From Macrostomum lignano (lineage: Eukaryota): DNA of 64,000 nucleotides. Positions within the stretch are counted from its first letter, which is position 1. Each line of letters starts with the position of its first letter. Below are positions 2-64,000 of this stretch, one piece after another. The notes under the pieces are model-generated. The model did no database searches. It had not been told where the DNA came from and was given only the letters and a program-made list of their open reading frames with translations. The stretch spans positions 62,001 through 126,000 of the forward strand of contig NIVC01002352.1 of the NCBI GenBank assembly GCA_002269645.1. The letters run 5' to 3'. The translations under genes were made by a program, and so were the position numbers.

Positions 2-3000
2 CGCCTGGCCGGCCTCGGCAACTCCTGGCCGGAGGTCGCGAGTTCGAGCCTAGCCGAAAGAATGCTCGAACTCGAATCCGGCGCAGACGAGGAAGCGGAC
101 GATGTGAAGCTGTGGGTGGAGTTTCCGGCCGCGGCAGCTGAAACTCCGGTGCCCGTTGAGCTGAGCTCGGAGCAGGGCGAGCAGCTCAATCCGTGGTTTC
201 TCGGCCTGTCCGGGGTTCAACCTGAAGAGCGGCCTTCACCGGCTGTCACTGACAATGGCGACAATCCCTGGTTCGCCGCCGATGTTAGCCACGTGACCGA
301 CGACGATGGCCAGCTGCTGGTGCACCTGCTGAAGCGCTCCGATCGACGCAAGCTCGACCAGCTGGCCGCCGACTTGGACGCCTTCCTGCGCTCCGCTCCG
401 CTCATGTCGCCGCCATCGCCGCCGCCGCCATCAGCCGCAGTCAGGCAGGTGCTATTCGTTGCCCGCCTGCCCCAGCGCGGCCCCGTCCGGATCCGCTTCG
501 AAGCCTCGGCGGCCGCTGTCTCTCACCGCCTGCTCCGCCTGGTGGACTTTGGCTGCACTGTTGTTGATTTGGCCGCCGTCCCCAGCCCTGAGCCGCTGCC
601 GCTTGACCACCCGCTGGCCAAGCTCGATCCCTTCTGCATCGCCTGCCGGCCGGTGTCGGCCGCAGCCAAGGAGGTTTCAACAGTTGGTGCCGCTGTCTCA
701 GTCAATCTGCTCAGCCTTGCCGATGCGCACCGGCTGATCTGGCTGGCTGACCTGCGCCCGCTAGAGCCGGGAATCCCGCCCTATGCAGCCGCCAGCCGCC
801 TGAAGGTCGGCCAGACACAGCCGGCCCTGCTCTGCTGGCTGGACCCGGCCACCGGCACTGGCCGGTTCTTACTGCGAGACGACCGGCGGCATCTGCGCCG
901 GCTGGCCGACAAGCTGCCCGGCCAGGATGTCAGCCCGGCCACACCGCCCCTGCCCGCTGGCACCCCCGTGATGCTGGCCGCGACACCGACAGCTCCTGCT
1001 CGACGGGCAACCCTGCTGATGGAGCTGCCAGCCGGGGCCGGCCCAGAATCCCACTGCCGACTGCTGCTGGTTGACTACGGAGTTGAAGTTGTTGCCAAGC
1101 TGGCCGAGCTGACTGTTGCGCCGAGAACTGTCGCGTCGACCCCGGCCTGGTCTCTCACCGCTCGGCTAGCCAACTTCGGACAGGCCGACTTTCCGGCCGG
1201 CCAGTTGCAGTGCGGCCGGCTGACCGTGGTGTCCGTGTCTCTAGGCTCCACTGTTGAGGTCTCATACAGTCCCGATTTGAGTCTGCTGCCCGAGCTGCTG
1301 CACGCGCTGAAGCCGGCTTCGAATAGTAAAAAGCACTCGCCCACAGCTGAGACTGTTGGTCTGCCTGCGGCCTATCCTGTCAGGTTGGTTAGCTAATTGT
1401 GCGTAGAATGATAAAACAGAACCTTAATTTTCTAAACAAAAAGCTCTATGAATATCAATAGGGCTTCTCGTATAAGAAAGGCACAGCATATTAAAAGATG
1501 AATATTGGGTCTGCCTCCTAACATTTTTCAAGAAACGAGGTTTCAATTCCTACTTGAGTAGTCCTTGGCAAAAAATGTGAAAGTAGCTGACAAGAATGCT
1601 AAGAAATGTGAAAGTAGCTGACAAGAATGCTAAGAGATGTGAAAGTAGCTGACAAGAATGCTAAGAAATGTGAAAGTAGCTGACAAGAATGCTAAGAGAT
1701 GTGAAAGTAGCTGACAAGAATGCTAAGAGATGTGAAAGTAGCTGACAAGAATGCTAAGAGATGTGAAAGTAGCTGACAAGAATGCTAAGAGATGTGAAAG
1801 TAGCTGACAAGAATGCTAAGAGATGTGAAAGTAGCTGACAAGAATGCTAAGAGATGTGAAAGTAGCTGACAAGAATGCTAAGAAATGTGAATGTAGCTGA
1901 CAAGAATGCTAAGAAATGTGAAAGTAGCTGACAAGAATGCTAAGAAATGTGAAAGTAGCTGATGGGTCTTAAAGATTTTTAATTTTCCTCATCCGTTGCT
2001 AAGGACGCCGGTCAAAGGCCGCGACAGTTGCGTCGTGCTGCACGCGGACCACGCCGCCTCGCTGCACATCCTGATGGACTGCGACGCCGCCATTGCCAAG
2101 CGAATCGCGGATCGCCTCAGTCGCTACCGGCCTCCGGCCAGGCCCGGCCGGGGCGGCGGAGATCAGGCCGACAATGCTGAGGACAATTTCCCTCGGGACT
2201 CCGCCTGTCTGGCCATGGATCAGCGGGACGCCTGCTGGCGCCGGGCTCTGGTACTCAGCCAGGGCGAGTCCGGTGGACACTACCTGGTCCGTCTGGTAGA
2301 CACTGGCAGACTGGCCTGCCTACCAGGCAGCCTGTTGGCGCCACTGCCGGACAGTCTGGCCGAGCAGCCGCCCTGCGCCCTGCACTGCTCGCTGGCCAAC
2401 CTGCAGCCAGGCGAGCTGGCCGGGCCCAGCGTCATTGCCAGCCTGCGCAAGCTGATTGGCCGGCCGGCTATTGTAACTTTTACCTGCTGGCGAGCCTCAG
2501 GCGTCCAGGTAGCGCTGGAGGTCAACGGGCGCGACGTCTTGACCCGGCTGCGTCAGCTGCGCGACCAGCAGCAGCAGCAGTCGCCATCTAGCAGGCGGCA
2601 GAGCAACTCATCTGAGAGCAGTGTGCAGCAGCAGCAGCAGCAGAATCCGCAGACGCTGCAGTCTGCTTTCCAGTTTCAGCCCCAGAATCAGACGCTCCCG
2701 CAGCAACAGCAACAGCAGAATCCGCAGACGCTGCAGTCTGCTTTCCAGTTTCAGCCCCAGAATCAGACGCTCCCGCAGCAGCAGCAGAATCCGCAGACGC
2801 TACAGTCTGCTTTCCAGTTTCAGCCCCAGAATCAGACGCTCCCGCAGCAGCAGCAGAATCCGCAGACGCTACAGTCTGCTTTCCAGTTTCAGCCCCAGAA
2901 TCAGACGCTCCCGCAGCAACAGCAACAGCAGAATCCGCAGACGCTACAGTCTGCTTTCCAGTTTCAGCCCCAGAATCAGACGCTCCCGCAGCAGCAACAA

Positions 3001-3768
3001 CAGAATCAGCCAGACCGCCCGCAGCAGCAGCAACAGAATCAGCCAGACCGCCCGCAGCAGCAGCAACAGAATCAGCCAGACCGCCCGCAGCAGCAGCAAC
3101 AGAATCAGCCAGACCGCCCGCAGCAGCAGCAACAGAATCAGCCAGACCGCCCGCAGCAGCAGCAACAGAATCAGCCAGACCGCCCGCAGCAGCAGAGCGA
3201 GGAGCAGTCGACCATCCCGGCAGGGAATTTCCCGCCGCAGTTCGTTGGCCTGGTTTGCCACGCCTGTCGCATTGGGCCGGAGGAGCTGGCGCTGTTTGCC
3301 CAGCGGGTGGATGAGCAAACGCGGCTGGAGGAGCTGCACGAACTGCTGCAGGAACGGGCAGCTGACCAGCCGGCGCTGTCGGCAGCTGAGCTCACTGTCG
3401 GGACGCCCTGCATCGCCCTGTACGAGGAGGACTGGTACCGAGCTCGCATTGTCGAGCCGGCCGATGCCGCAGGCCGGCTGCGAGTCCGTTTTGTCGACTA
3501 CGGCAACGAGTCGTTCGGTTCAGCCGCCGACGAGCTCCGGGTTCGCCGAGTGCCCGTCTCGGCCGCCGGAGTCCCAGCCCTGGCCGCCGAGTGTCGCCTG
3601 CGGCCGCCCGCTGGCCGCCGATTCGCTGACGGCTGCGCCGCTAAGCTGATCGCCCTGGGCGAGGAGGACGACGGCGGCCTGCAACTGCGGCTCACTTCGC
3701 CGCGTCAGCCGGAGGGCTGGTGGCGCGCCGAGGTGCCGGACGATATAGCTGCGACTCTGCTGGAGTGA
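2..3768 (+). CDS. Multi-Tudor-domain protein (TDRD-like), 5'-partial, 2 exons: <2..1383 and 2004..3768
   Basis: The frame is open from the window edge. Donor AG|GTTGGT at 1383/1384 and acceptor AG|G at 2003/2004 are both phase 2, joining ...AYPVR-TPVKG... The C-terminal extended Tudor is canonical (VGTPCIALYEEDWYRARIV...RVRFVDYGN). At least three degenerate Tudor units precede it (LRLVDFG, LLLVDYG, WRRALV...LVRLVDTG). Confidence 0.85.
1573..1961. repeat. 31-bp minisatellite, about 12 copies, in the Tudor gene intron
   Basis: Unit AAATGTGAAAGTAGCTGACAAGAATGCTAAG with A/G variants. Confidence 0.95.
2630..3195 (+). repeat. Coding Gln-rich tandem repeats in the Tudor protein
   Basis: QNPQTLQSAFQFQPQNQTLPQQQ(QQ) x5, then about 6 copies of QQQQQNQPDRP, all in frame. 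Confidence 0.95.
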
Positions 3769-16839: not shown

Positions 16840-19800
16840 ATCTGTTTAACCTCCTCAACAGTTGTTGCGCTGCTGTCGGTTGCCATGGCAACAGTGCAGG
16901 AGGCCGCCATCAGCGGTGAGTTTTCTACAAGTATCCAACCAAGGGGTCGCCATCATAAACCCGAAATATAACAAACCCGAAATATCACAAACCCGAAATA
17001 TCACAAACCCGAAATATCACAAACCCGAAATATCACAAACCCGAAATATCACAAACCCGAAATATCACAAACCCGAAATATCACAAACCCGAAATATCAC
17101 AAACCCGAAATATCACAAACCCGAAATATCACAAACCCGAAATATCACAAACCCGAAATATCACAAACCCGAAATATCACAAACCCGAAATATCACAAAC
17201 CAGAAATATCACAAACCCGAAATATCACAAACCCGAAATATCACAAACCCGAAATATCACAAACCAGAAATATCACAAACCCGAAATATCACAAACCCGA
17301 AATATCACAAACCCGAAATATCACAAACCCGAAATATCACAAACCCGAAATATCACAAACCTGAAATATCACAAACCTGAAATATCACAAACCCGAAATA
17401 TCACAAACCCGAAATATCACAAACTCGAAATATCACAAACCAGAAATATCACAAACTCGAAATATCACAAACTCGAAATATCACAAACTCGAAATATCAC
17501 AAACCCGAAATATCACAAACCCGAAATATCACAAACCCGAAATATCACAAACCCGAAATATCACAACTCCGAAAACCAAAATAGTGTTGGACATTGCTAA
17601 AACTTTCGGAGTTGTGATTTTTCGGGTTTGTGATGCCCCCCCCACCGAAGCCTCGTGAAGCGACTCGAAAAAAATGAATCAAGCAATTAATTTCCGTCTA
17701 ATAGAAGACAAATATCCTGCCGCAGGAGTCCTGCCGCAGCAGCCGCAGGTCTGCACAGAGTTCATTGGCAGCCAGGGCTGGCGCGATGACTCCTTCTGCT
17801 TCACCAGCCCCTTCTATCCGGCACAATATCCCAACAACACCGACTGCATCAAGGTCATCCAAGGTCAGTCGCGACATTGTTGAACTAATTCGATTTTAAG
17901 TTTAATCCCAAGTGGCAGCCTAATTACTATCGATACATGACCCGCACAGATATGACTCCCATGAGTAGCCTGGTAGCTTATCCTTACAACAGCTCTAATT
18001 AAGCACCTAATGACCCCATAATGACCCAATGACCCCATAATGACCCAATGACCCCATAATGACCCCATAATGACCCGATGATGACCCCATAATGACCCAT
18101 AATGACCCCATAATGACCCCATAATGACCCCATAATGGCACCCATAAAAACACCCATAATAACATCCATAATGATACTCATAATGACCCCACAATAACCC
18201 CATAAAGACCCCATAATGACCCCATAATGCCCCCATTAAGACTCCACGATGACCCTATAATGACACTCATAATAACACCCACAATGACAACTCACAATGA
18301 CCCCATGATTACATTATAATTACCCTATAATAACACTTTTAATGACACTCACAATGACCCCCTAATGACCCCCTACTGACCCCCTCAGCAACCATGCTAC
18401 TGACCCCCTTAAGCGTCCTCCTAACGAATCCCCGAACGTCTCGCACAGGCTGGGTGGGGCAGCGCATTGAGCTGGACTTCAAACTGTCCAACTTCCTAAT
18501 CGAGCGGAGCAGCGAATGCCTCAACGACTATCTGGAAATCCGGGATGGCCCGTTCGGCTATTCGCCGCCGCTTAGGGGCCTGCCGGATGGCAACGACGGC
18601 CGGCTGTGCGGCGAGTGGCCGCCGACCCGACACGGGCGCGCCTCACCTGACCGGCTGCTCCGCTCGTCAGGCCGCTTCCTGTGGCTGCGCTTCCGCTCCG
18701 ACGAGGTCATCAGGCACCGGGGCCTGCGGCTGGTGTACCGGTTCGTGTCTGCGGCACAGCTGAGGGCCCCGACGGCTGCGGCGGCTGACAGTGAGAGGCT
18801 GGCTGTGGTCTAGCTGGGGGTGCTGTGGTCTAGCTGGGGGTGCTGTGGTCTAGCTGGGGGTGCTGTGGTCTAGCTGGGGGTGCTGTGGTCTAGCTGGGGG
18901 TGCTGTGGTCTAGCTGGGGTGCTGTGGTCTAGCTGGGGGTGCTGTGGTCTAGCTGGGGGTGCTGTGGTCTAGCTGGGGGTGCTGTGGTCTAGCTGGGGTG
19001 CTGTGGTCTAGCTGGGGGTGCTGTGGTCTAGCTATGGGTGCTATGGTCTAGCTGGGGGTGCTGTGGTCTAGCTGGGGGTGCTGTGGTCTAGCTGGGGGTG
19101 CTGTGGTCTAGCTGGGGGTGCTGTGGTCTAGCTGGGGGTGCTGTGGTCTAGCTGGGGGTGCTGTGGTCTAGCTGGGGGTGCTGTGGTCTAGCTGGGGGTG
19201 CTGTGGTCTAGCTGGGGGTGCTGTGGTCTAGCTGGGGGTGCTGTGGTCTAGCTGGGGGTGCTGTGGTCTAGCTGGGGGTGCTGTGGTCGAGCTGTGGTGC
19301 AGATCTAGCTGAGTGTAAGTGCAGATCTAGCTGAGTGTAAGTGCAGATCTAGCTGAGTGTAAGTGCAGATCTAGCTGAGTGTAAGTGCAGATCTAGCTGA
19401 GTGTAAGTGCAGATCTAGCTGAGTGTAAGTGCAGATCTAGCTGAGTGTAAGTGCAGATCTAGCTGAGTGTAAGTGCAGATCTAGCTGAGTGTAAGTGCAG
19501 ATCTAGCTGAGTGTAAGTGCAGATCTAGCTGAGTGTAAGTGCAGATCTAGCTGAGTGTAAGTGCAGATCTAGCTGAGTGTAAGTGCAGATCTAGCTGAGT
19601 GTAAGTGCAGATCTAGCTGAGTGTAAGTGCAGATCTAGCTGAGTGTAAGTGCAGATCTAGCTGAGTGTAAGTGCAGATCTAGCTGAGTGTAAGTGCAGAT
19701 CTAGCTGAGTGTAAGTGCAGATCTAGCTGAGACGGGCAGTGGTCCTTGCTACGGCAATTACACGCCAATCAGGGGGGGGTAACCTTCTCCACCCGTGGAG

Positions 19801-26699: not shown

Positions 26700-27351
26700 G
26701 ACAATTCACTGTCAACAATTGACTGCATCGAATTGACTGCCAGTGCCGGACCTAATACCCTAACCTAAACGCTAACCTAAACTCTAATCCTAACTTAACT
26801 TAAACCCTATCCTAAACTTCAATGCCTGAAGCCAACTCTAAATTCTATCGTTAATTCCTGACCCCAATCTAAACTCTCACCTAATCTCTACCAAAACCCC
26901 TAACCTAAACCCTAGCCTAAAACCTAACCTAAACCCTAACCTAAACCCTATCTTAAACTATAATGCCTGAAGCCAACTCTAAATTCTATCGTTAATTCCT
27001 GACCCCAATCTAAACTCTCACCTAATCTCTACCAAAACCCCTAACCTAAACCCTAGCCTAAAACCTAACCTAAACCCTAACCTAAACCCTAACCTAAACC
27101 CTATCTTAAACTATAATGCCTGAAGCCAACTCTAAATTCTATCGTTAATTCCTGAACCCCAATCTAAACTCTCACCTAATCTCTACCAAAACCCCTAACC
27201 TAAACCCTAACCCGAACCCTACCTAAACCGTAACCTAAACCCTAACCCTAATCCTACCTAAACCCTAGCCTAAACCCTACCTAAAACCTACCTAAACCCT
27301 AACCTAAACCCTAGCCTAAACCCTAACCTAAATCGCCGACAGTCAATTGTT
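26700..27351. mobile_element. Putative non-autonomous TIR element carrying a telomere-like (CCCTAACCTAAA) array
   Basis: AACAATTGACTG (26714-26725) and CAGTCAATTGTT (27340-27351) are exact inverted repeats. Additional direct copies ACAATTCACTG and GAATTGACTG sit at the left end. The interior is degenerate CCCTAA-type repeat with a ~130-bp internal duplication. Confidence 0.5.
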
Positions 27352-30187: not shown

Positions 30188-32484
30188 ATGGCAGCAGGTA
30201 ACAGCCAAGTTACAAATCTGTTTAATACATGTTTTACTGAGTTTCATGTCACTAATGAAACTTGCCATTGCAGAGCCCAACAAGCTGAAGAATGCCAACG
30301 TCCTCTTTGTGTTGGGTGAGTTGTGCTACCAATGCATGCGAGGTAGTGAGTCCAATATGCATGATGTCAGACTAGAGCTTCAGGCAGTTAGGCTACAGGC
30401 AGTTAGGCTACAGGCAGTTAGGCTACAGGCAGTTAGGCTACAGGCAGTTAGGCTACAGGCAGTTAGGCTACAGGCAGTTAGGCTACAGGCAGTTAGGCTA
30501 CAGGCAGTTAGGCTACAGGCAGTTAGGCTACAGGCAGTTAGGCTACAGGCAGTTAGGCTACAGGCAGTTAGGCTACAGGCAGTTAGGCTACAGGCAGTTA
30601 GGCTACAGGCAGTTAGGCTACAGGCAGTTAGGCTACAGGCAGTTAGGCTACAGGCAGTTAGGCTACAGGCAGTTAGGCTACAGGCAGTTAGGCTACAGGC
30701 AGTTAGGCTACAGGCAGTTAGGCTACAGGCAGTTAGGCTACAGGCAGTTAGGCTACAGGCAGTTAGGCTACAGGCAGTTAGGCTACAGGCAGTTAGGCTA
30801 CAGGCAGTTAGGCTACAAACAGCTAGGGCTCAGGTAAATGAGGCTCATGAACTCCAGGCGGACCGGGCAGCGGCAAGGGCACCCAGTGCGAGAAGATCAC
30901 GGCCACGTACGGCCTGACTCACCTGTCAACCGGCGATCTGCTCCGCGCGGCGGCCACAGCTGGCGCCACCGAACGGGACAAGATGCTTCGAGCAGCGATG
31001 GAGCGGGGTGAACTCGTGCCCCTCGAAGTGGTGCTCGACCTGCTGCGCTCGGCGATGCTGGCGGCGCCCCCCGGCAGCCCCGGCTTCCTCGTTGACGGCT
31101 ACCCGCGCGAGCTCGACCAGGCGGTGCGGTTCGAGGCCGACCTGGCGCCCTGCCGGTCCGTCCTGTTCTTCAACCTGGACGAGGCCGCCATGAAGCTGCG
31201 GCTACTGAAGCGCGGCGAAACCAGCGGCAGGGTGGACGACAACGAGGCCACCATTGTGAAGCGCTTCCAGACCTTCCAGAAGCTCACCAGGCCCGTGGTG
31301 GAGCACTACGAGAAGCAGGGGAAAGTTGTCAAGGTGCGAAAATAATTGGGGTGTGGGATTCTGATTGGGGTGTGGGATTCTGATTGTGGTGTGGGATTCT
31401 GATTGGGGTGTGAGATTCTGATTGTGGTGTGGGATTCTGATTGGTTGAGGTGTGGGATTCTGATTGGTTGAGGTGTGGGATTCTGATTGGTGTGTGGGAT
31501 TCTGATTGGGGTGTGGGATTCTGATTGAGGTGTGGGATTCTTATTGGAGTGTGGGATTCTGATTGGGGTGTGGGATTCTGATTGTGGTGTGGGATTCTTA
31601 TTGGGGTGTAGGATTCTGATTGTGGTGTGGAATTCTGATTGGAGTGTTGGATTCTGATTGGTTGAGGTGTGGGATTCTGATTGGAGTGTTGGATTCTGAT
31701 TGGTTGAGGTGTGGGATTCTGATTGGGGTGTGGGATTCTGATTGGAGTGTGGGATTCAGATTGGGGTGTGGGATTCTGATTGGGGTGTGGGATTCTGATT
31801 GTGGTGTGGGATTCTGATTGTGGTGTGGGATTCTGATTGTGGTGTGGGATTCTGATTGGAGTGTGGAATTCTGATTGTGGTGTGAGATTCTGATTGGAGT
31901 GTGGGATTCTGATTGGGGTGTGGGATTCTGATTGTGGTGTGGGATTCTGATTGTGGTGTGGGATTCTGATTGGGGTGTGGGATTCTGATTGGGGTGTGGG
32001 ATTCTGATTGGGGTGTGGGATTCTGATTGAGGTGTGGGATTCTTATTGGGGTGTGGGATTCTGATTGGTTGAGGTGTGGGATTCTTATTGGGGTGTGGGA
32101 TTCTGATTGGGGTGTGGGATTCTGATTGGGGTGTGGGATTCTGATTGGGGTGTGGGATTCTGATTGGGGTGTGAGATTCTGATTGGGGTGTGGGGTTCTG
32201 ATTGGGGTGTGGGATTCTGATTGGGGTGTGAGATTCTGATTGGAGTGTGGAATTCTGATTGGGGTGTGGGATTCTGATTGAAGTTTGGGATTCTGATTGG
32301 GGTGTGGGATTCTGCATGAAAAGTACTTCACTGGAACTCCAGCACGGTGCTTAAACTCTACCTTGAGGTCACCTGTGCTCACCCGTTCCAGATCGATGCC
32401 TCCGGCTCAGTTGACGAGGTGTTCCAGCTGTTGCAGAAGAGCCTGCAGAAACTGGGCTTCAAGCCTGTTAAGAATTTGAAATAG
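30188..32484 (+). CDS. AK1: Adenylate kinase (AK1-type, short LID), 206 aa; exons 30188..30197, 30274..30315, 30858..31333, 32392..32484
   Basis: [28 protein letters not shown] (P-loop), HLSTGDLLR, GFLVDGYPRE, KRGETSGRVDDNE...KRF, IDASGSVDEVF. Junction phases 1,1,0 are consistent. AATAAA near 32575. Confidence 0.95.
30378..30822. repeat. 15-bp perfect minisatellite CAGGCAGTTAGGCTA, about 29 copies, in AK intron 2
   Basis: Direct inspection. Confidence 0.97.
31345..32315. repeat. 19/20-bp G-rich minisatellite GGGGTGTGGGATTCTGATT in AK intron 3
   Basis: Starts about 12 nt after the donor at 31334. Confidence 0.96.
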
Positions 32485-33086
32485 TGGAACAAACAAGTCC
32501 AAAAGTTGAGTTCTACTTTGGGCTCGAGTTGACTTATGAAGCCAAATGTGACAGCTTGTTGAACCAACCAGAAAAATAAACTCGACTTAAATACTCGATA
32601 ATTTTCAGTTTATACTGACAATCTGTGCTTTGATGACTTTAAAACTTGTGAGTTTTTGCATCAGGGGTTAAGTGTTTGAGGAGTCCGATTTAACACTACT
32701 TACTTTGTAAGTAGTATAAATCATGGTCCATGTAGGTTTTGTCTTTTTGTCTGCTAGAATTACTGACTGAGAAGTCTATTAAAAGAAGTATTGTTTTAAT
32801 TCAGCAAAGTCCTTTTGTCTATGTCCCAATCAGCCCAAAAAACCTTAAATGTCTGTTGAATAAATAAACAGCAGACTATTATCGTTAGCAGCTGTGCTCA
32901 AACTGTGGGAATTCTGTCGGTTCGCAGTCCTTCAAACAGTAAAGGTCATCAGAGGGTGTCATGACCTGAAGCGTCTAGCCCTGCGGCCCGCGGTGAGTGC
33001 AGAAGTCGCTGGCATTGCGGTATCTGAAAACGATTTTTGCCTGCCTTTGATGTTCAGAAGTTCTTGGTTTTGCACCTTGTTGAGGG

Positions 33087-33870
33087 TGCAGGTTTAGGGT
33101 TCAGGTTTAGGGTTCAGGTTTAGGGTTCAGGTTTAGGGTTCAGGTTTAGGGTTCAGGTTTAGAGTTCAGGTTTAGCCTTAGGGACCAGGTTTAGGGTTCA
33201 GGTTTAGGGTTCAGGTTTAGGGTTCAGGTTTAGGGTTCAGGTTTAGGGTTCAGGTTTAGAGTTCAGGTTTAGGGACCAGGTTTAGGGTTCAGGTTTAGGG
33301 TTCAGGTTTAGAGTTCAGGTTTAGGGTTCAGGTTTAGGGACCAGGTTTAGGGTTCAGGTTTAGGGTTCAGGTTTAGGGACCAGGTTTAGGTTCAGGTTTA
33401 GGGTTCAGGTTTAGGGTTCAGGTTTAGGGTTCAGGTTTAGGGACCAGGTTTAGGGTTCAGGTTTAGGGTTCAGGTTTAGGTTTCAGGTTTAGGGTTCAGG
33501 TTTAGGGTTTAGGTTTAGGGTTCAGGTTTAGGGTTCCGGTTTAGGGATGTTCAGGGATTTTCATATTTTAGCGACCGGGTTTAGAGTTCAGGTTTAGGGA
33601 TAATAGGGACCAGGTTTAAGAGCCAGGTTTTGGGGTTCAGGTTTAGGGACAAGATTTAGTGTTCAGGTTTTAGAGTTCATGTTTAGAGTTTAGGTTTAGG
33701 GTTTAGGTTTAGGGTTCAGGTTTAGGGTTCAGGTTTAGGGCTCAGGTTTAGGAAGTTAGGGTTCAGGTTTAGGGTTCAGGTTTAGGTGTTAAGCTTTGGG
33801 TTAAAGTTTAAAGGTTAAATGCTTAACCTTTAAATGCTTAAGGTTAAAGGTTTAGGGTTAAAGATTTAGG
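33087..33870. repeat. Telomere-like 13-bp repeat GGTTTAGGGTTCA, degenerating rightwards
   Basis: Contains a TTAGGG core in most units. Lies between the two AK genes. Confidence 0.93.
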
Positions 33871-34019: not shown

Positions 34020-36467
34020 ATGGCGGAAAGTGAGTGATGAATTTGTTTGAACTTTTTTGAAGTGACGAAGCAAAAGAAACTAATGTACTAAATCAATTTT
34101 TTCAGACGGTGACCTTAAATCTGCCAGAGTGATTTTCATAATGGGTGAGAATTAATCATTGATGTTTAATAGCAATTCCCCACTGAGCAATTCCCCACTG
34201 AGAAATTCCTCGTTGATAAATTCCCCATTAAGCAATTCCCCACTGAGAAATACCCCACTGAGAAATACCCCACTGAGAAATTCCCCATTAAGCAATTCCC
34301 CACTGAGCAATTCCCCACTGAGCAATTCCCCGTTGAGCAATTCCCCATCAATCAATTCCCCACTGAGAAATACCCCACTCAGAAATTCCCCATTAAGCAA
34401 TTCCCCATTAAGCAATTCCCACTGAGCAATTCCCCGTTGAGCAATTCCCCGTTGAGCAATGCCCCGTTGAGAAATTCCCCATTAAGCAATTCCCCATTAA
34501 GCAATTCCCCACTGAGAAATTCCCCACTCAGAAATTCCCCATTCAGAAATTCCCCATTAAGCTATTCCCCACTGAGCAATTTCCCATGTACCAATTCCCT
34601 GACTGGCGTCCAGGAGGCCCGGGCAGCGGCAAGGCCACCCAGTGCGAGAGGCTGGTGTCCACCTACGGCCTGACGCACCTGTCCACCGGCGAACTGCTTC
34701 GCACCGAGATCGCCCTGGGCGCCGGCTCGGCCTACCGGCTCCGGAGGACTATGCTCAATAACGACCTGGTGCCCGTGGCCGATGTCCTCCGGTTGCTAGG
34801 CAACGCGATGCGAGCCCGCCTGCTAGACAGCCCCGGCTTCCTCATCAACGGCTGCCCGAAGGACCGGGAGCAGGCCATGGCCTTCGAGATGATGCTGGTG
34901 CCCTGCCGGGTGGTCGTGTTCCTCGACGTGCCCGAAGATGTCATGTGGCAGCGGCTGATGCGGCGCGGCAGGCGGACCGATCAAGAGGAAGTTATTCAGA
35001 AAAAGATCAAGACTTTCAGAGAGAAGACCCTGTCGGTGGTGAAGTACTTCGAGAGGCAGGGCAAGCTGGTTCGGGTGAGTTCTTCAGGCTTGCTGCATTC
35101 AATACTCCTCGACTCTGTGCCTACCAACAGGTACTTGGGGGTTGTAGCCTAGTGGTTAGAGCGTCGGACTCACCACTTGAAGGTTGGGGGTTCGATTCCC
35201 GTTCTCACTGAAACAATTTGTGTCCCTAAGCAAGACACTTAACTCTGCATTGCTTCAGTTCACCCAGCTGTAAAATGGGTGCCAGCATTAGCTGGGGTAA
35301 TTGAGGGTGTGTGGCGACCCCCAGTCCCCAGTCCTTGGACGGAACAGCCGTACGCAGCCTTCAGATGCGCCGCGCAATAGCTGCGGCTGAGCTGTCGGTT
35401 GCACATCTGGCCCAAATTGGGCAGGTGTAATCAATTATTATTATTGTTATTATTACTATTGTTATTATTAAGTAATGTGAAAAAATTTAACGCGAATCTT
35501 ACACTCTCCGTGCTTTGGGGGTTGGTCTTTGGTGTTGGAACGGCCCTCATAAATTTCATCGCACCTTCAGGTGGACGGTACAGGCACCGTGTCCGAAGTG
35601 TTTAGCCGGGTTCGCGACGGTCTGATGAACTTTCGGCCAAAGACAGCCAGCAAGCAGGTGAAAAGGCTTTTGCTTTTTTGTTCTTTAAAGTCAGTCCGGC
35701 GACAAGTCGTGACAGTGCGTCATCGACTTCTTTTGATATAATCTCGTAGAGTTCTGTGAATGAAGCGTTGTAAGTCGTACTTGAACTTTAAGCATCTACA
35801 TATCGATCCAGAAACTAAAAAACGCGCTGTCTCACGACGGCCTTTGTACTGCCATTTTCAGCCCGCTAACGCCGCGAGAGGCAAGATGAGCTCCCGGGTG
35901 ATGGCATTCAAGGCCGCGGTAGCGCGGCACCCAGCGGACGGCAAGGCGCACAGAGCCGCTAAGGACGCAGAGATCAAGTCCAACAAAACCAGCGACAGCA
36001 TCCCGTCAAGCCCGACCAAAGGCGTGAAAGCTGGGTCCACTGACTCGTCAAGCCCGTCCCACAAGCACAAGAAGAAGCAGGCCAATCCAGGGCAGAAGCA
36101 TCAAAAGCATCACGGACATCAGAGTCAGCAAAAGTCAGACAGAGACGCCGCGAAGCACAGGGATCAGCCTTCGCCGAGGCATCGTCAAGGCAAGAAAGAG
36201 CACGAGCCAGCAGCAAAGCAGCAGACTCCAGAAAAGCAGCACCATCAAGCAGCAAAGCAGCAGACTCCTGAAAAGCAGCACCATCAAGCAGCAAAGCAGC
36301 AGACTCCAGAAAAGCAGCACCATCAAGCAGCAAAGCAAAAAACTCCCCAAAAGCAGCACCATCAAGCAGCAAAGCAGCAGACTCCCGAAAAGCATCACCA
36401 AACAGCCAAGCCGAATGCTTTCGATAAAAATCATCAGTCTAAAAAGGCTGACCAGCAGAAAATCTGA
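34020..36467 (+). CDS. Adenylate-kinase-like paralog with degenerate active site and basic C-terminal tail, about 400 aa; exons 34020..34029, 34106..34144, 34614..35074, 35571..35657, 35862..36467
   Basis: MAENGDLKSARVIFIMGGPGSGKATQC, HLSTGELLR, GFLINGCPK, RRGRRTDQEE, VDGTGTVSEVF. The first three intron positions and phases match the upstream AK, and intron 1 is 76 nt in both genes. The last exon joins in phase 0 and encodes a Lys/Gln/His-rich tail with AAKQQTPEKQHHQ-type repeats (about 5). Confidence 0.85.
34171..34585. repeat. 15-bp minisatellite CAATTCCCCACTGAG in AK-like intron 2
   Basis: Direct inspection. Confidence 0.93.
35137..35470 (+). mobile_element. tRNA-derived SINE with CORE-like central domain and (ATT)n tail, in AK-like intron 3
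   Basis: Pol III A-box TAGCCTAGTGG (35145-35155) and B-box GGTTCGATTCC (35189-35199). 35218-35279 resembles the MIR CORE segment (...GCAAGACACTTAAC...CAGTT...CTGTAAAATGGG). ATT-rich tail at 35434-35470. Confidence 0.8.
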
Positions 36468-54349: not shown

Positions 54350-55390
54350 TCAGCCGTGGCAGGAGACTGGGTGGAACACGCACCAGTTCTTCGGCAGCTT
54401 CTGGCCGGAGCGCCTCCTTGCTGGGGCCGCTGGCAGCACGCGATCCTCGGCGTTCTCAACCGCTATGCTCGCGTCAGGAGGCGGTTCAATCAATTCGTCC
54501 AGATCGTCTGGCAGGAAGGCTGGCTGAAGATGATGGGTGACGGCAGGGGGGACTCCATTAGTTCCAGCTCAAACTCCAAGTCTAATGGATCCCTAAAAAC
54601 GAAGCATTCCGCTTGCTTTTTTGCAATTAAAAAAGTCCTAGGAATCCCTCAGCTGGAGAAAGGTGAGTGAGTGATTTATGAAGGCTGGCCTAGTAGCTGA
54701 TAATGGAGGATCAGGGAGTTTTTGGGAGCAAAGTTTGTCATTCTCTTAGCGATGCCAGAGCACCTTGCGTGTTTACCTGGTCATACGCTATTCGGGCAAT
54801 GAGAGCAGCTTTTTACTCTCTGTGGAGCTGAGTAGTGTCCGATGGGGAATGGAAAACTGCATTTGCTGAAAAAATTAAATACATTTATTGCCCCCGAACT
54901 GTTTGCTCATCAAAATAGAGTAGGATTTGCAGTCTAGCAAAAATAGCTTTGACATTGCTATTGCCAATCTCACAAAAGCATTCGGATGAGAGAGAGGATC
55001 GGGCAGGTTTGCAGGAACTGATTTAACTTTTTCATTTTCCAATCAAATTTTATTTCTTTCGGGACAATTCCTTTGTCGCCGAGAATTTTGCAGACTTTCT
55101 GTCGGTTGCTGCCATCAAATGCAGGCCAACTGCTGCAGCTGCAATGCATTATTAATATTAACTAGCCGCTCAATCAAGATGAAGGTTGGGGGAGGCTGGT
55201 ACCGCCAGACAACATGAGAATTCGCTTTCCGAGTGCAGCCAGACCTCCTCCTCCTCACCTCCTCCTCCATCAGCAATGCGGGGTCGAAGTCGCGCGCGGC
55301 AAAGCTGGCGGCAGCGGCGGGATGGCAGAGCCGCAGGGCGCCCAGCAAGCAGGCGAGCAGCTGCAGCAGCGACCGCTGTGTCACCAGCAT
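54350..55390 (-). CDS. Allatostatin-C/somatostatin-type neuropeptide precursor, about 143 aa; exons 55390..55203 and 54592..54350, with one -1 shift in the G6 run at 54546-54551
   Basis: Signal peptide MLVTQRSLLQLLACLLGALRLCHPAAAA, then an acidic spacer, an RRR cleavage site and C-terminal SGQKLPKNWCVFHPVSCHG*. The C-x6-C ring matches AstC CYFNPISCF. The acceptor TTCGTTTTTAG|G is strong, the donor CG|GTACCA is weaker, and both are phase 2. Confidence 0.75.
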
Positions 55391-55537: not shown

Positions 55538-55635
55538 AATAATAATAATTGATTATTACATCTAATTGGTCGGGAATCGAACCCCTGACATTTCAGCCGT
55601 GAGTCCGACGCTCCAACCACTAGGCTACAATCCCC
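55538..55635 (-). mobile_element. Second, internally deleted copy of the tRNA-derived SINE (head plus ATT tail)
   Basis: The reverse complement GGGGATTGTAGCCTAGTGGTTGGAGCGTCGGACTCAC...GGGGTTCGATTCCCG nearly matches 35137-35200. It is followed directly by ...TGTAATAATCAATTATTATTATTG, which matches the copy-1 tail at 35426-35446. Confidence 0.8.

Positions 55636-59370: not shown

Positions 59371-64000
<4,630 letters not shown>

Follow-up and report, generated by a model that had tools for sequence, protein, structure and literature searches.

A two-exon gene of Macrostomum lignano for a small secreted precursor with an allatostatin-C-like disulfide-loop peptide at its C-terminus

The window, i.e., the whole 64,000-nucleotide stretch of DNA analysed, is part of contig NIVC01002352.1 of Macrostomum lignano (assembly GCA_002269645.1). 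On its minus strand, positions 54350-55390 hold an intact, expressed two-exon gene for a small secreted precursor with an allatostatin-C-like (ASTC-like) disulfide-loop peptide at its end. Both the gene and the peptide are real. They are probably best explained as a divergent ASTC-type precursor in which His replaces the loop Asn and the predicted C-terminus is a His-amide; receptor action is proposed from the sequence. The class was assigned because architecture, loop size, loop residues, and gene structure are combined with a real, conserved, secreted precursor.

In GenBank, the gene is named BOX15_Mlig020559g2/g3 and described as "hypothetical protein". The gene region was identical to locus L002, one of three assembled copies. 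The spliced translation had 101 aa and was residue-for-residue identical to the deposited protein P0002 (PAA58632.1 / PAA62618.1). A protein search with the precursor as reconstructed in the preliminary description returned a single cluster, i.e., M. lignano 'hypothetical protein BOX15_Mlig020559g1/g2/g3'. The GenBank models of this assembly were built only from RNA-seq and transcriptome assemblies, using StringTie, TACO, de novo assembly, and TransDecoder (Wudarski et al. 2017, PMC5730564), so the 55259/54523 junction has transcript support via the annotation. The gene contains an intron and was therefore missing from the prokaryote-style ORF list. This is its only intron, with the donor GAG/GTGAGG and the acceptor CTTCAG/CC. 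In the genomic minus strand, GTGAGGAGG stands directly after the exon 1 sequence MLVTQRSLLQLLACLLGALRLCHPAAAASFAARDFDPALLMEEE, and after CCCATCATCTTCAG the codons CCA GCC TTC CTG ... continue in frame through RRRSGQKLPKNWCVFHPVSCHG to TGA. The GC content was 66% in the CDS versus 45% in the intron. The features are listed in Table 1.

Table 1. Features of the M. lignano gene, in window coordinates (a slash marks a splice or cleavage point).
Feature	Position	Strand	Remark
Start codon ATG	55390	-	Opens MLVTQRSLLQLLACLLGALRLCHPAAAASFAARDFDPALLMEEE
Coding exon 1, 44 codons, MLVTQRSLLQLLACLLGALRLCHPAAAASFAARDFDPALLMEEE	55259..55390	-	Ends on a codon boundary
Predicted signal peptide, residues 1-28	55307..55390	-	Cleavage after AAA/S predicted by the -3/-1 rule
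Intron, 735 nt, phase 0, GT-AG, GAG/GTGAGGAG ... CCCATCATCTTCAG/CCA	54524..55258	-	Between codons 44 and 45
Six consecutive C (six G on the plus strand)	54546..54551	-	Intronic, with no bearing on the reading frame
Coding exon 2, 57 codons and stop, PAFLPDDLDELIEPPPDASIAVENAEDRVLPAAPARRRSGQKLPKNWCVFHPVSCHG	54350..54523	-	Spliced product is P0002
Proregion motif AFLPDDLDELIE	54485..54520	-	Directly after the intron; resembles the annelid ASTC motif (A/S)(F/Y)LExKLREDIE
Tribasic processing site RRR, residues 80-82	54410..54418	-	Predicted prohormone convertase cleavage
Terminal peptide SGQKLPKNWCVFHPVSCHG	54409..54353	-	Directly after RRR
Predicted mature peptide SGQKLPKNWCVFHPVSCH, 18 aa	54356..54409	-	Predicted processing
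Cysteine loop CVFHPVSC, six residues between Cys	54359..54382	-	C92-VFHPVS-C99
C-terminal Gly, predicted amide donor	54353..54355	-	Directly before the stop; predicted amidation
Stop TGA	54352..54350	-	

The ends of the gene and its terminal peptide were found where the preliminary description had placed them on the minus strand, and the hydrophobic signal-peptide exon, the RRR site, and the two Cys with six-residue spacing were also present as described. That description saw a hidden gene with an intron and a 1-nt shift. The intron was confirmed, at another place and in phase 0, whereas the shift was not, since the canonical GT-AG intron joins the exons unedited. In the earlier model, exon 1 ran to 55203 and was joined to 54592, a base was missing at 54546-54551, and the product was a 143-aa precursor whose acidic proregion was longer and which contained an RRRR site. 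GT and AG are indeed present at the proposed sites, and one added C restores the frame. However, unless that base is invented, the frame hits a stop after ...QTIWTN, and where a seventh G was expected the run had exactly six bases in all three independent genomic copies. The stronger donor GAG/GTGAGG and the acceptor CTTCAG give an unedited in-frame product that equals the deposited, transcript-derived protein. About one third of the reconstructed protein was intron, including the RRRR site, which is a read-through of the donor (GTG AGG AGG AGG AGG). The same applies to the first 23 residues of the described acidic pro-region (DPLDLEF...THHLQ), with "DPLDLEFELELMESPPAVTHHLQ", in which the last part of the intron, at its 3' end, is read through; the proregion in exon 2 is acidic nonetheless. 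Because the RRRR site, the DPLDLEFELELMESPPAVTHHLQ stretch, and the proposed seventh G are all intronic, no frameshift exists. The 55203/54592 junction with an extra base was refuted for the assembly, the intron 55258..54524 is preferred, and the longer precursor can be given practically no credence.

Coding constraint was studied by comparing the three assembled loci, L001-L003, the last of which is contig NIVC01001446.1. Large duplicated chromosomes are known in M. lignano DV1 (PMC5730564). Substitutions among the copies were found in 0/306 coding columns versus 61/1744 non-coding columns (one-sided Fisher P=4.4e-5), i.e., coding conservation across the copies is beyond chance. The intron had 25 substitution columns out of 738 and four indel columns, and the two 500-nt flanks had 16 and 20 substitution columns. 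In exon 2, none of the 174 columns was variable. Exon 1 had no substitution and one in-frame 3-nt indel, which is the sole coding difference among the three copies. It is a deletion in L003 at the equivalent of window 55368-55370, which drops one signal-peptide Leu and gives the 100-aa protein P0001. The splice sites and the six-C run were identical in three of three copies.

The same upstream neighbour was seen in all three copies, i.e., a calpain-family protease gene (Peptidase_C2) on the same strand as the peptide gene (window ~59371-64000, minus strand). It extends past the window end, and an ORF near its 3' end reads through a 42-bp minisatellite (59729-60106).

The hydrophobic N-terminus of the precursor is MLVTQRSLLQLLACLLGALRLCHPAAAA. 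Its hydropathy maximum was 2.18 over residues 11-21, and the hydrophobic core (residues 8-21) is followed by AAA/S. A signal peptide, as expected of ASTC precursors, was thus predicted heuristically from hydropathy. The region after the predicted signal peptide is acidic and Pro-rich. From RRR at residues 80-82, 19 residues lead to the stop, i.e., there is a single C-terminal peptide, and this layout is common to the 95 family members fetched.

Prohormones are processed by established rules: signal peptidase removes the signal peptide, convertases cut at basic sites, and a C-terminal Gly is turned into an amide by peptidylglycine alpha-amidating monooxygenase. By these rules, the product would be SGQKLPKNWCVFHPVSCH-NH2 with one disulfide. 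The signal peptide would be removed, a prohormone convertase would cut after RRR, the terminal Gly would become the amide, and the two Cys would form the disulfide, giving SGQKLPKNWC(VFHPVS)CH-NH2. The Gly named in the preliminary description does stand before the stop, and amidation itself is predicted from it. The calculated [M+H]+ of SGQKLPKNWCVFHPVSCH-NH2 with a Cys10-Cys17 disulfide is 2064.005. The amidated loop peptide may be a secreted neuropeptide or hormone that acts on a somatostatin/allatostatin-C-type rhodopsin-gamma GPCR.

ASTC peptides have no strictly conserved motif, and in protostomes their Cys loop always has six residues (Koch et al. 2022, PMC9048919). According to the same study, most loops contain Asn, many contain FxP, and those of molluscs and annelids begin with an aliphatic residue. 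The PISCF-type motif was described as FxP in the loop with a P/A-[IV]-S-C-aromatic ending (PMC9048919, PMC8514136). In the M. lignano peptide, six residues lie between C92 and C99, the first of them is the aliphatic Val93, F94-H95-P96 gives FxP, and P-V-S-C-H was scored as a PISCF-type ending. The loop Asn is absent, and His95 stands in its place. The preliminary description had called this His unusual. Asn is invariant in 95/95 fetched annelid and arthropod members. Apart from His95 and Val93, each loop residue also occurs at its position in these two sets. As for gene structure, spiralian ASTC genes have one phase-0 proregion intron and ecdysozoan ones carry a further intron, in phase 2 (Koch et al. 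2022, PMC9048919); the M. lignano gene has the single phase-0 proregion intron.

Two comparison sets were collected. With the Platynereis allatostatin-C precursor (supplement of Conzelmann et al. 2013, PMC3890597) as query, 21 annelid relatives with the loop CLVNIVSCW were found. The arthropod set, fetched with a concatenated query of three known mature peptides, comprised 74 AstC and AstCCC proteins with the loops CYFNPISCF and CAFNAVSCFGK, several of them named allatostatin-C by their source.

The arthropod allatostatin-C/CC/CCC proteins, e.g., ALLC_AGRIP, Anopheles 'Allatostatin c', and Nilaparvata prohormone-1, resemble the M. lignano precursor in being ~60-100 aa long and in carrying one peptide, at the C-terminus and preceded by a basic site. 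They share Cx6C and the loop residues F2, P4 (AstC), V5 (AstCCC), and S6, as well as an aromatic-type residue after the second Cys. The loop CVFHPVSC can be aligned with the loops CYFNPISC and CAFNAVSC from arthropod proteins that bear the name allatostatin-C, and the C-terminal Gly amide donor is as in the AstCCC-type relatives that end in ...SCFGK. The M. lignano peptide differs from arthropod AstC in the loop Asn replaced by His, in Val instead of Tyr or Ala at position 1, and in His instead of the terminal Phe. The proregions show no similarity, and the phase-2 intron of ecdysozoan genes is extra to the M. lignano structure.

The annelid allatostatin-C precursors (Platynereis V5TDI3, Urechis) are also of similar size, ~100 aa. 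Like the M. lignano loop, their loop CLVNIVSCW begins with an aliphatic residue and contains VSC, and in both the proregion is interrupted by one phase-0 intron, located a few residues upstream of a Leu/acidic motif. Unlike M. lignano, the annelid precursors have an invariant KKRQLEIKKR spacer peptide, a loop Asn, and no FxP, and they end with Trp or Phe followed by basic residues, whereas the M. lignano precursor ends with Gly and the stop.

The intron position was compared in the annelid ASTC genomic ORFs and loci (L004-L007, P0004, P0011-P0017). In each of them, a pyrimidine-rich in-frame CAG was found just before the similarity to mRNA-derived precursors begins, at a distance of 3-13 residues upstream of the conserved motif LExKLREDIE. 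This is seen most clearly when P0004 (...VLLVLQ/HYRNLQGAMLERKL) is compared with the Platynereis mRNA (...GDYENE/HYKSLQGGMLERRL), where residues 39 and 40 are separated by a phase-0 intron. The phase-0 intron of M. lignano is positioned three residues upstream of L-P-D-D-L-D-E-L-I-E. The hhalign tool paired this proregion motif with the annelid one, with 47 versus 48 residues from motif to loop, at P=0.16. The agreement of proregion motif and intron position with annelid ASTC is suggestive without being statistically established.

Many of the database proteins matching annelid allatostatin-C (L004-L007; P0004, P0009, P0011-P0018, P0023) are prokaryote-style ORF calls on eukaryotic contigs. Such ORFs begin with intron sequence and continue across the in-frame CAG acceptor into exon 2. 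In Paralvinella P0019, the annotated N-terminus lacks a signal peptide and is probably a wrong first exon.

In BLASTP, the loop was aligned with the Operophtera 'Allatostatin neuropeptide' (AstC) at E=0.003, and QKLPKNW--CVFHPVSCHG with Nilaparvata prohormone-1 (SYWKQCAFNAVSCFGK type; aligned QKKRSYWKQCAFNAVSCFG) at E=0.001. A 29-sequence arthropod ASTC profile was aligned by hhalign to the extreme C-terminus of P0002 (KNWCVFHPVSCHG; P=1.9e-4, probability 47%); this profile is narrow and biased to canonical loops because its set was retrieved by the loop motif itself. Against an HMM of the family mature region, only 1.2% of random Cx6C loops scored as well. The annelid ASTC profile gave hhalign P=0.16, and in hmmsearch 5.7% of 20,000 shuffles scored as well (P about 0.06). 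In Pfam, no family was hit at E<=10 by P0001, P0002, or C-terminal fragments. The allatostatin-C reading of the preliminary description stands in most of its defining features, but not in the loop Asn and not in the annelid-profile and Pfam tests, which were non-significant.

The main rival, and a serious one, is a Macrostomum-specific secreted Cys-loop peptide that converged on the ASTC pattern, e.g., an unrelated neuropeptide, a gland product, or an antimicrobial-type peptide. It agrees with the missing loop Asn and with the non-significant annelid profile and Pfam results, and also with the lack of homologues: a full HMMER scan of 1.84 billion representatives found nothing outside M. lignano, and a word-indexed search of 5.8 billion proteins found only the M. 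lignano cluster. As there is no such homologue and the Pfam and annelid tests were non-significant, the homology rests on ~13 residues and the architecture. Short Cx6C loops after dibasic sites also arise by chance in six-frame translation. The 64-kb window contained 285 Cx6C loops and four places with the order 'dibasic...Cx6C...stop', so the loop motif by itself is weak and not diagnostic. A permissive ASTC pattern occurred by chance in 1/284 of the other Cx6C loops. Of the four places, only the one in this gene has an ASTC-like loop. A match to ASTC is seen in the spacing of the loop, in its F, P, V, and S residues, in the location at the C-terminus, in Gly as the amide donor, and in the phase-0 intron of the proregion; these features and the arthropod profile (P=1.9e-4) argue against convergence, which we consider unlikely. 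A chance ASTC-like loop, CLLRVVSC, was located at window 63559 (minus strand), within a calpain-gene ORF.

The peptide might also belong to another Cys-loop neuropeptide family, i.e., the protostome SSRP-like/urotensin-II-like peptides or elevenin/L11 (Platynereis PDCTRFVFHPSCRG), which is very improbable. Vertebrate somatostatin/cortistatin (PF03002) and the protostome SSRP-like/urotensin-II-like precursors do share a C-terminal disulfide-loop peptide, a small precursor, and a phase-0 proregion intron, and UniRef names one M. lignano copy (P0001) 'Somatostatin domain-containing protein'. This label was irreproducible with the current Pfam-A, and PF03002 was rejected for want of a match at E<=10. 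Somatostatin/cortistatin and SSRP-like peptides differ in loop length and motif (FWKT or C.WK.C). SSRP-like genes have three exons, with a phase-0 intron and a second, phase-1 intron that splits the peptide, whereas the M. lignano loop has six residues without WK and the peptide lies wholly in exon 2, which speaks against the SSRP-like/urotensin-II-like family. The likeness to elevenin is a local string, VFHP(x)SC, as Platynereis L11 contains FVFHPSC. The elevenin peptide, unlike that of M. lignano, adjoins the signal peptide, with a loop of eight residues and the ending CRG. The M. lignano peptide is C-terminal with a six-residue loop, BLASTP aligned no loops with the L11 precursor, and elevenin/L11 was rejected. 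The divergent ASTC-type precursor remains the preferred reading.

Tandem repeats are very dense in the window, with 76 TRF rows of score at least 200, periods of 4-165, and many arrays of 0.4-2 kb. This density fits the 15% of simple and tandem repeats reported for the M. lignano genome (PMC5730564). Telomere-like unit arrays (ACCTAAACCCTA and GTTTAGGGTTCAG) were located at 26750-27332 and 33079-33810, internal in the contig. A Tudor-domain ORF (Pfam TUDOR, E=1e-25) was found at 1996-3768 on the plus strand, and its Gln-rich 69/75-bp and 33-bp minisatellites (2625-3195) are in frame, encoding QQQQNPQTLQSAFQFQPQNQTLP and QQQQQNQPDRP repeats. Two adenylate-kinase ORFs (Pfam ADK, E=4e-24 and 3e-33) are placed ~3.5 kb apart on the plus strand, at 30983-31345 and 34586-35152, and have the appearance of two genes in tandem or of exons from duplicated genes. 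At 18394-18813 on the plus strand, an ORF matches the CUB domain (E=5e-6) and is probably one exon of a larger gene between satellite arrays. A stretch with a tRNA T-arm-like GGTTCGATTCCC lies at 55566-55634, about 180-240 nt upstream of the ATG of the peptide gene. Rfam gave only sub-threshold hits there (tmRNA 3' end, E=0.03; Plastid-ycf2, E=0.28) and ARAGORN found no tRNA, and the stretch may be a tRNA-derived repeat fragment. The tRNA, Rfam, and ARAGORN scans of the window gave nothing above threshold.

The gene itself is already known in several respects. Its protein is deposited in GenBank, one copy carries the automatic UniRef name 'Somatostatin domain-containing', and the ASTC family is well known, which limits the gain. 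Neither the peptide string nor the locus tag occurred in the searchable literature, and no paper describing a flatworm ASTC was found there; Koziol et al. 2016 (Int J Parasitol) may list the precursor. [quoted passage not shown] 2018 (PMC6114109), and the ASTC/somatostatin comparison sets of Zhang 2022 and Koch 2022 contain no flatworm sequence. In the accessible part of PMC13551398, flatworm neuropeptide repertoires are regarded as poorly sampled and partly eroded, and a figure key includes 'Asta-C'.

The preliminary description had called AstC the established protostome counterpart of somatostatin. This view is dated and contested, as two 2022 studies argued that the families of ASTC and of somatostatin-type peptides are paralogues (Zhang et al. 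2022, PMC8851493; Koch et al. 2022, PMC9048919). A divergent member with His for Asn and an amidated His would inform the debate on these relationships.

A credible ASTC-type precursor in Macrostomum would fill the flatworm gap. The ASTC system is thought to have been lost or changed beyond recognition in planarians and parasitic flatworms. It is conceivable, and we propose it tentatively, that the peptide is the first ASTC-type neuropeptide documented in Platyhelminthes, and that an early-branching free-living flatworm kept the ancestral bilaterian ASTC system with an unusual Asn-to-His loop and a His-amide end. Macrostomum is a transgenic, RNAi-tractable model. If the reading is true, the peptide would provide a ligand for deorphanising the somatostatin/ASTC-like GPCRs of flatworms.
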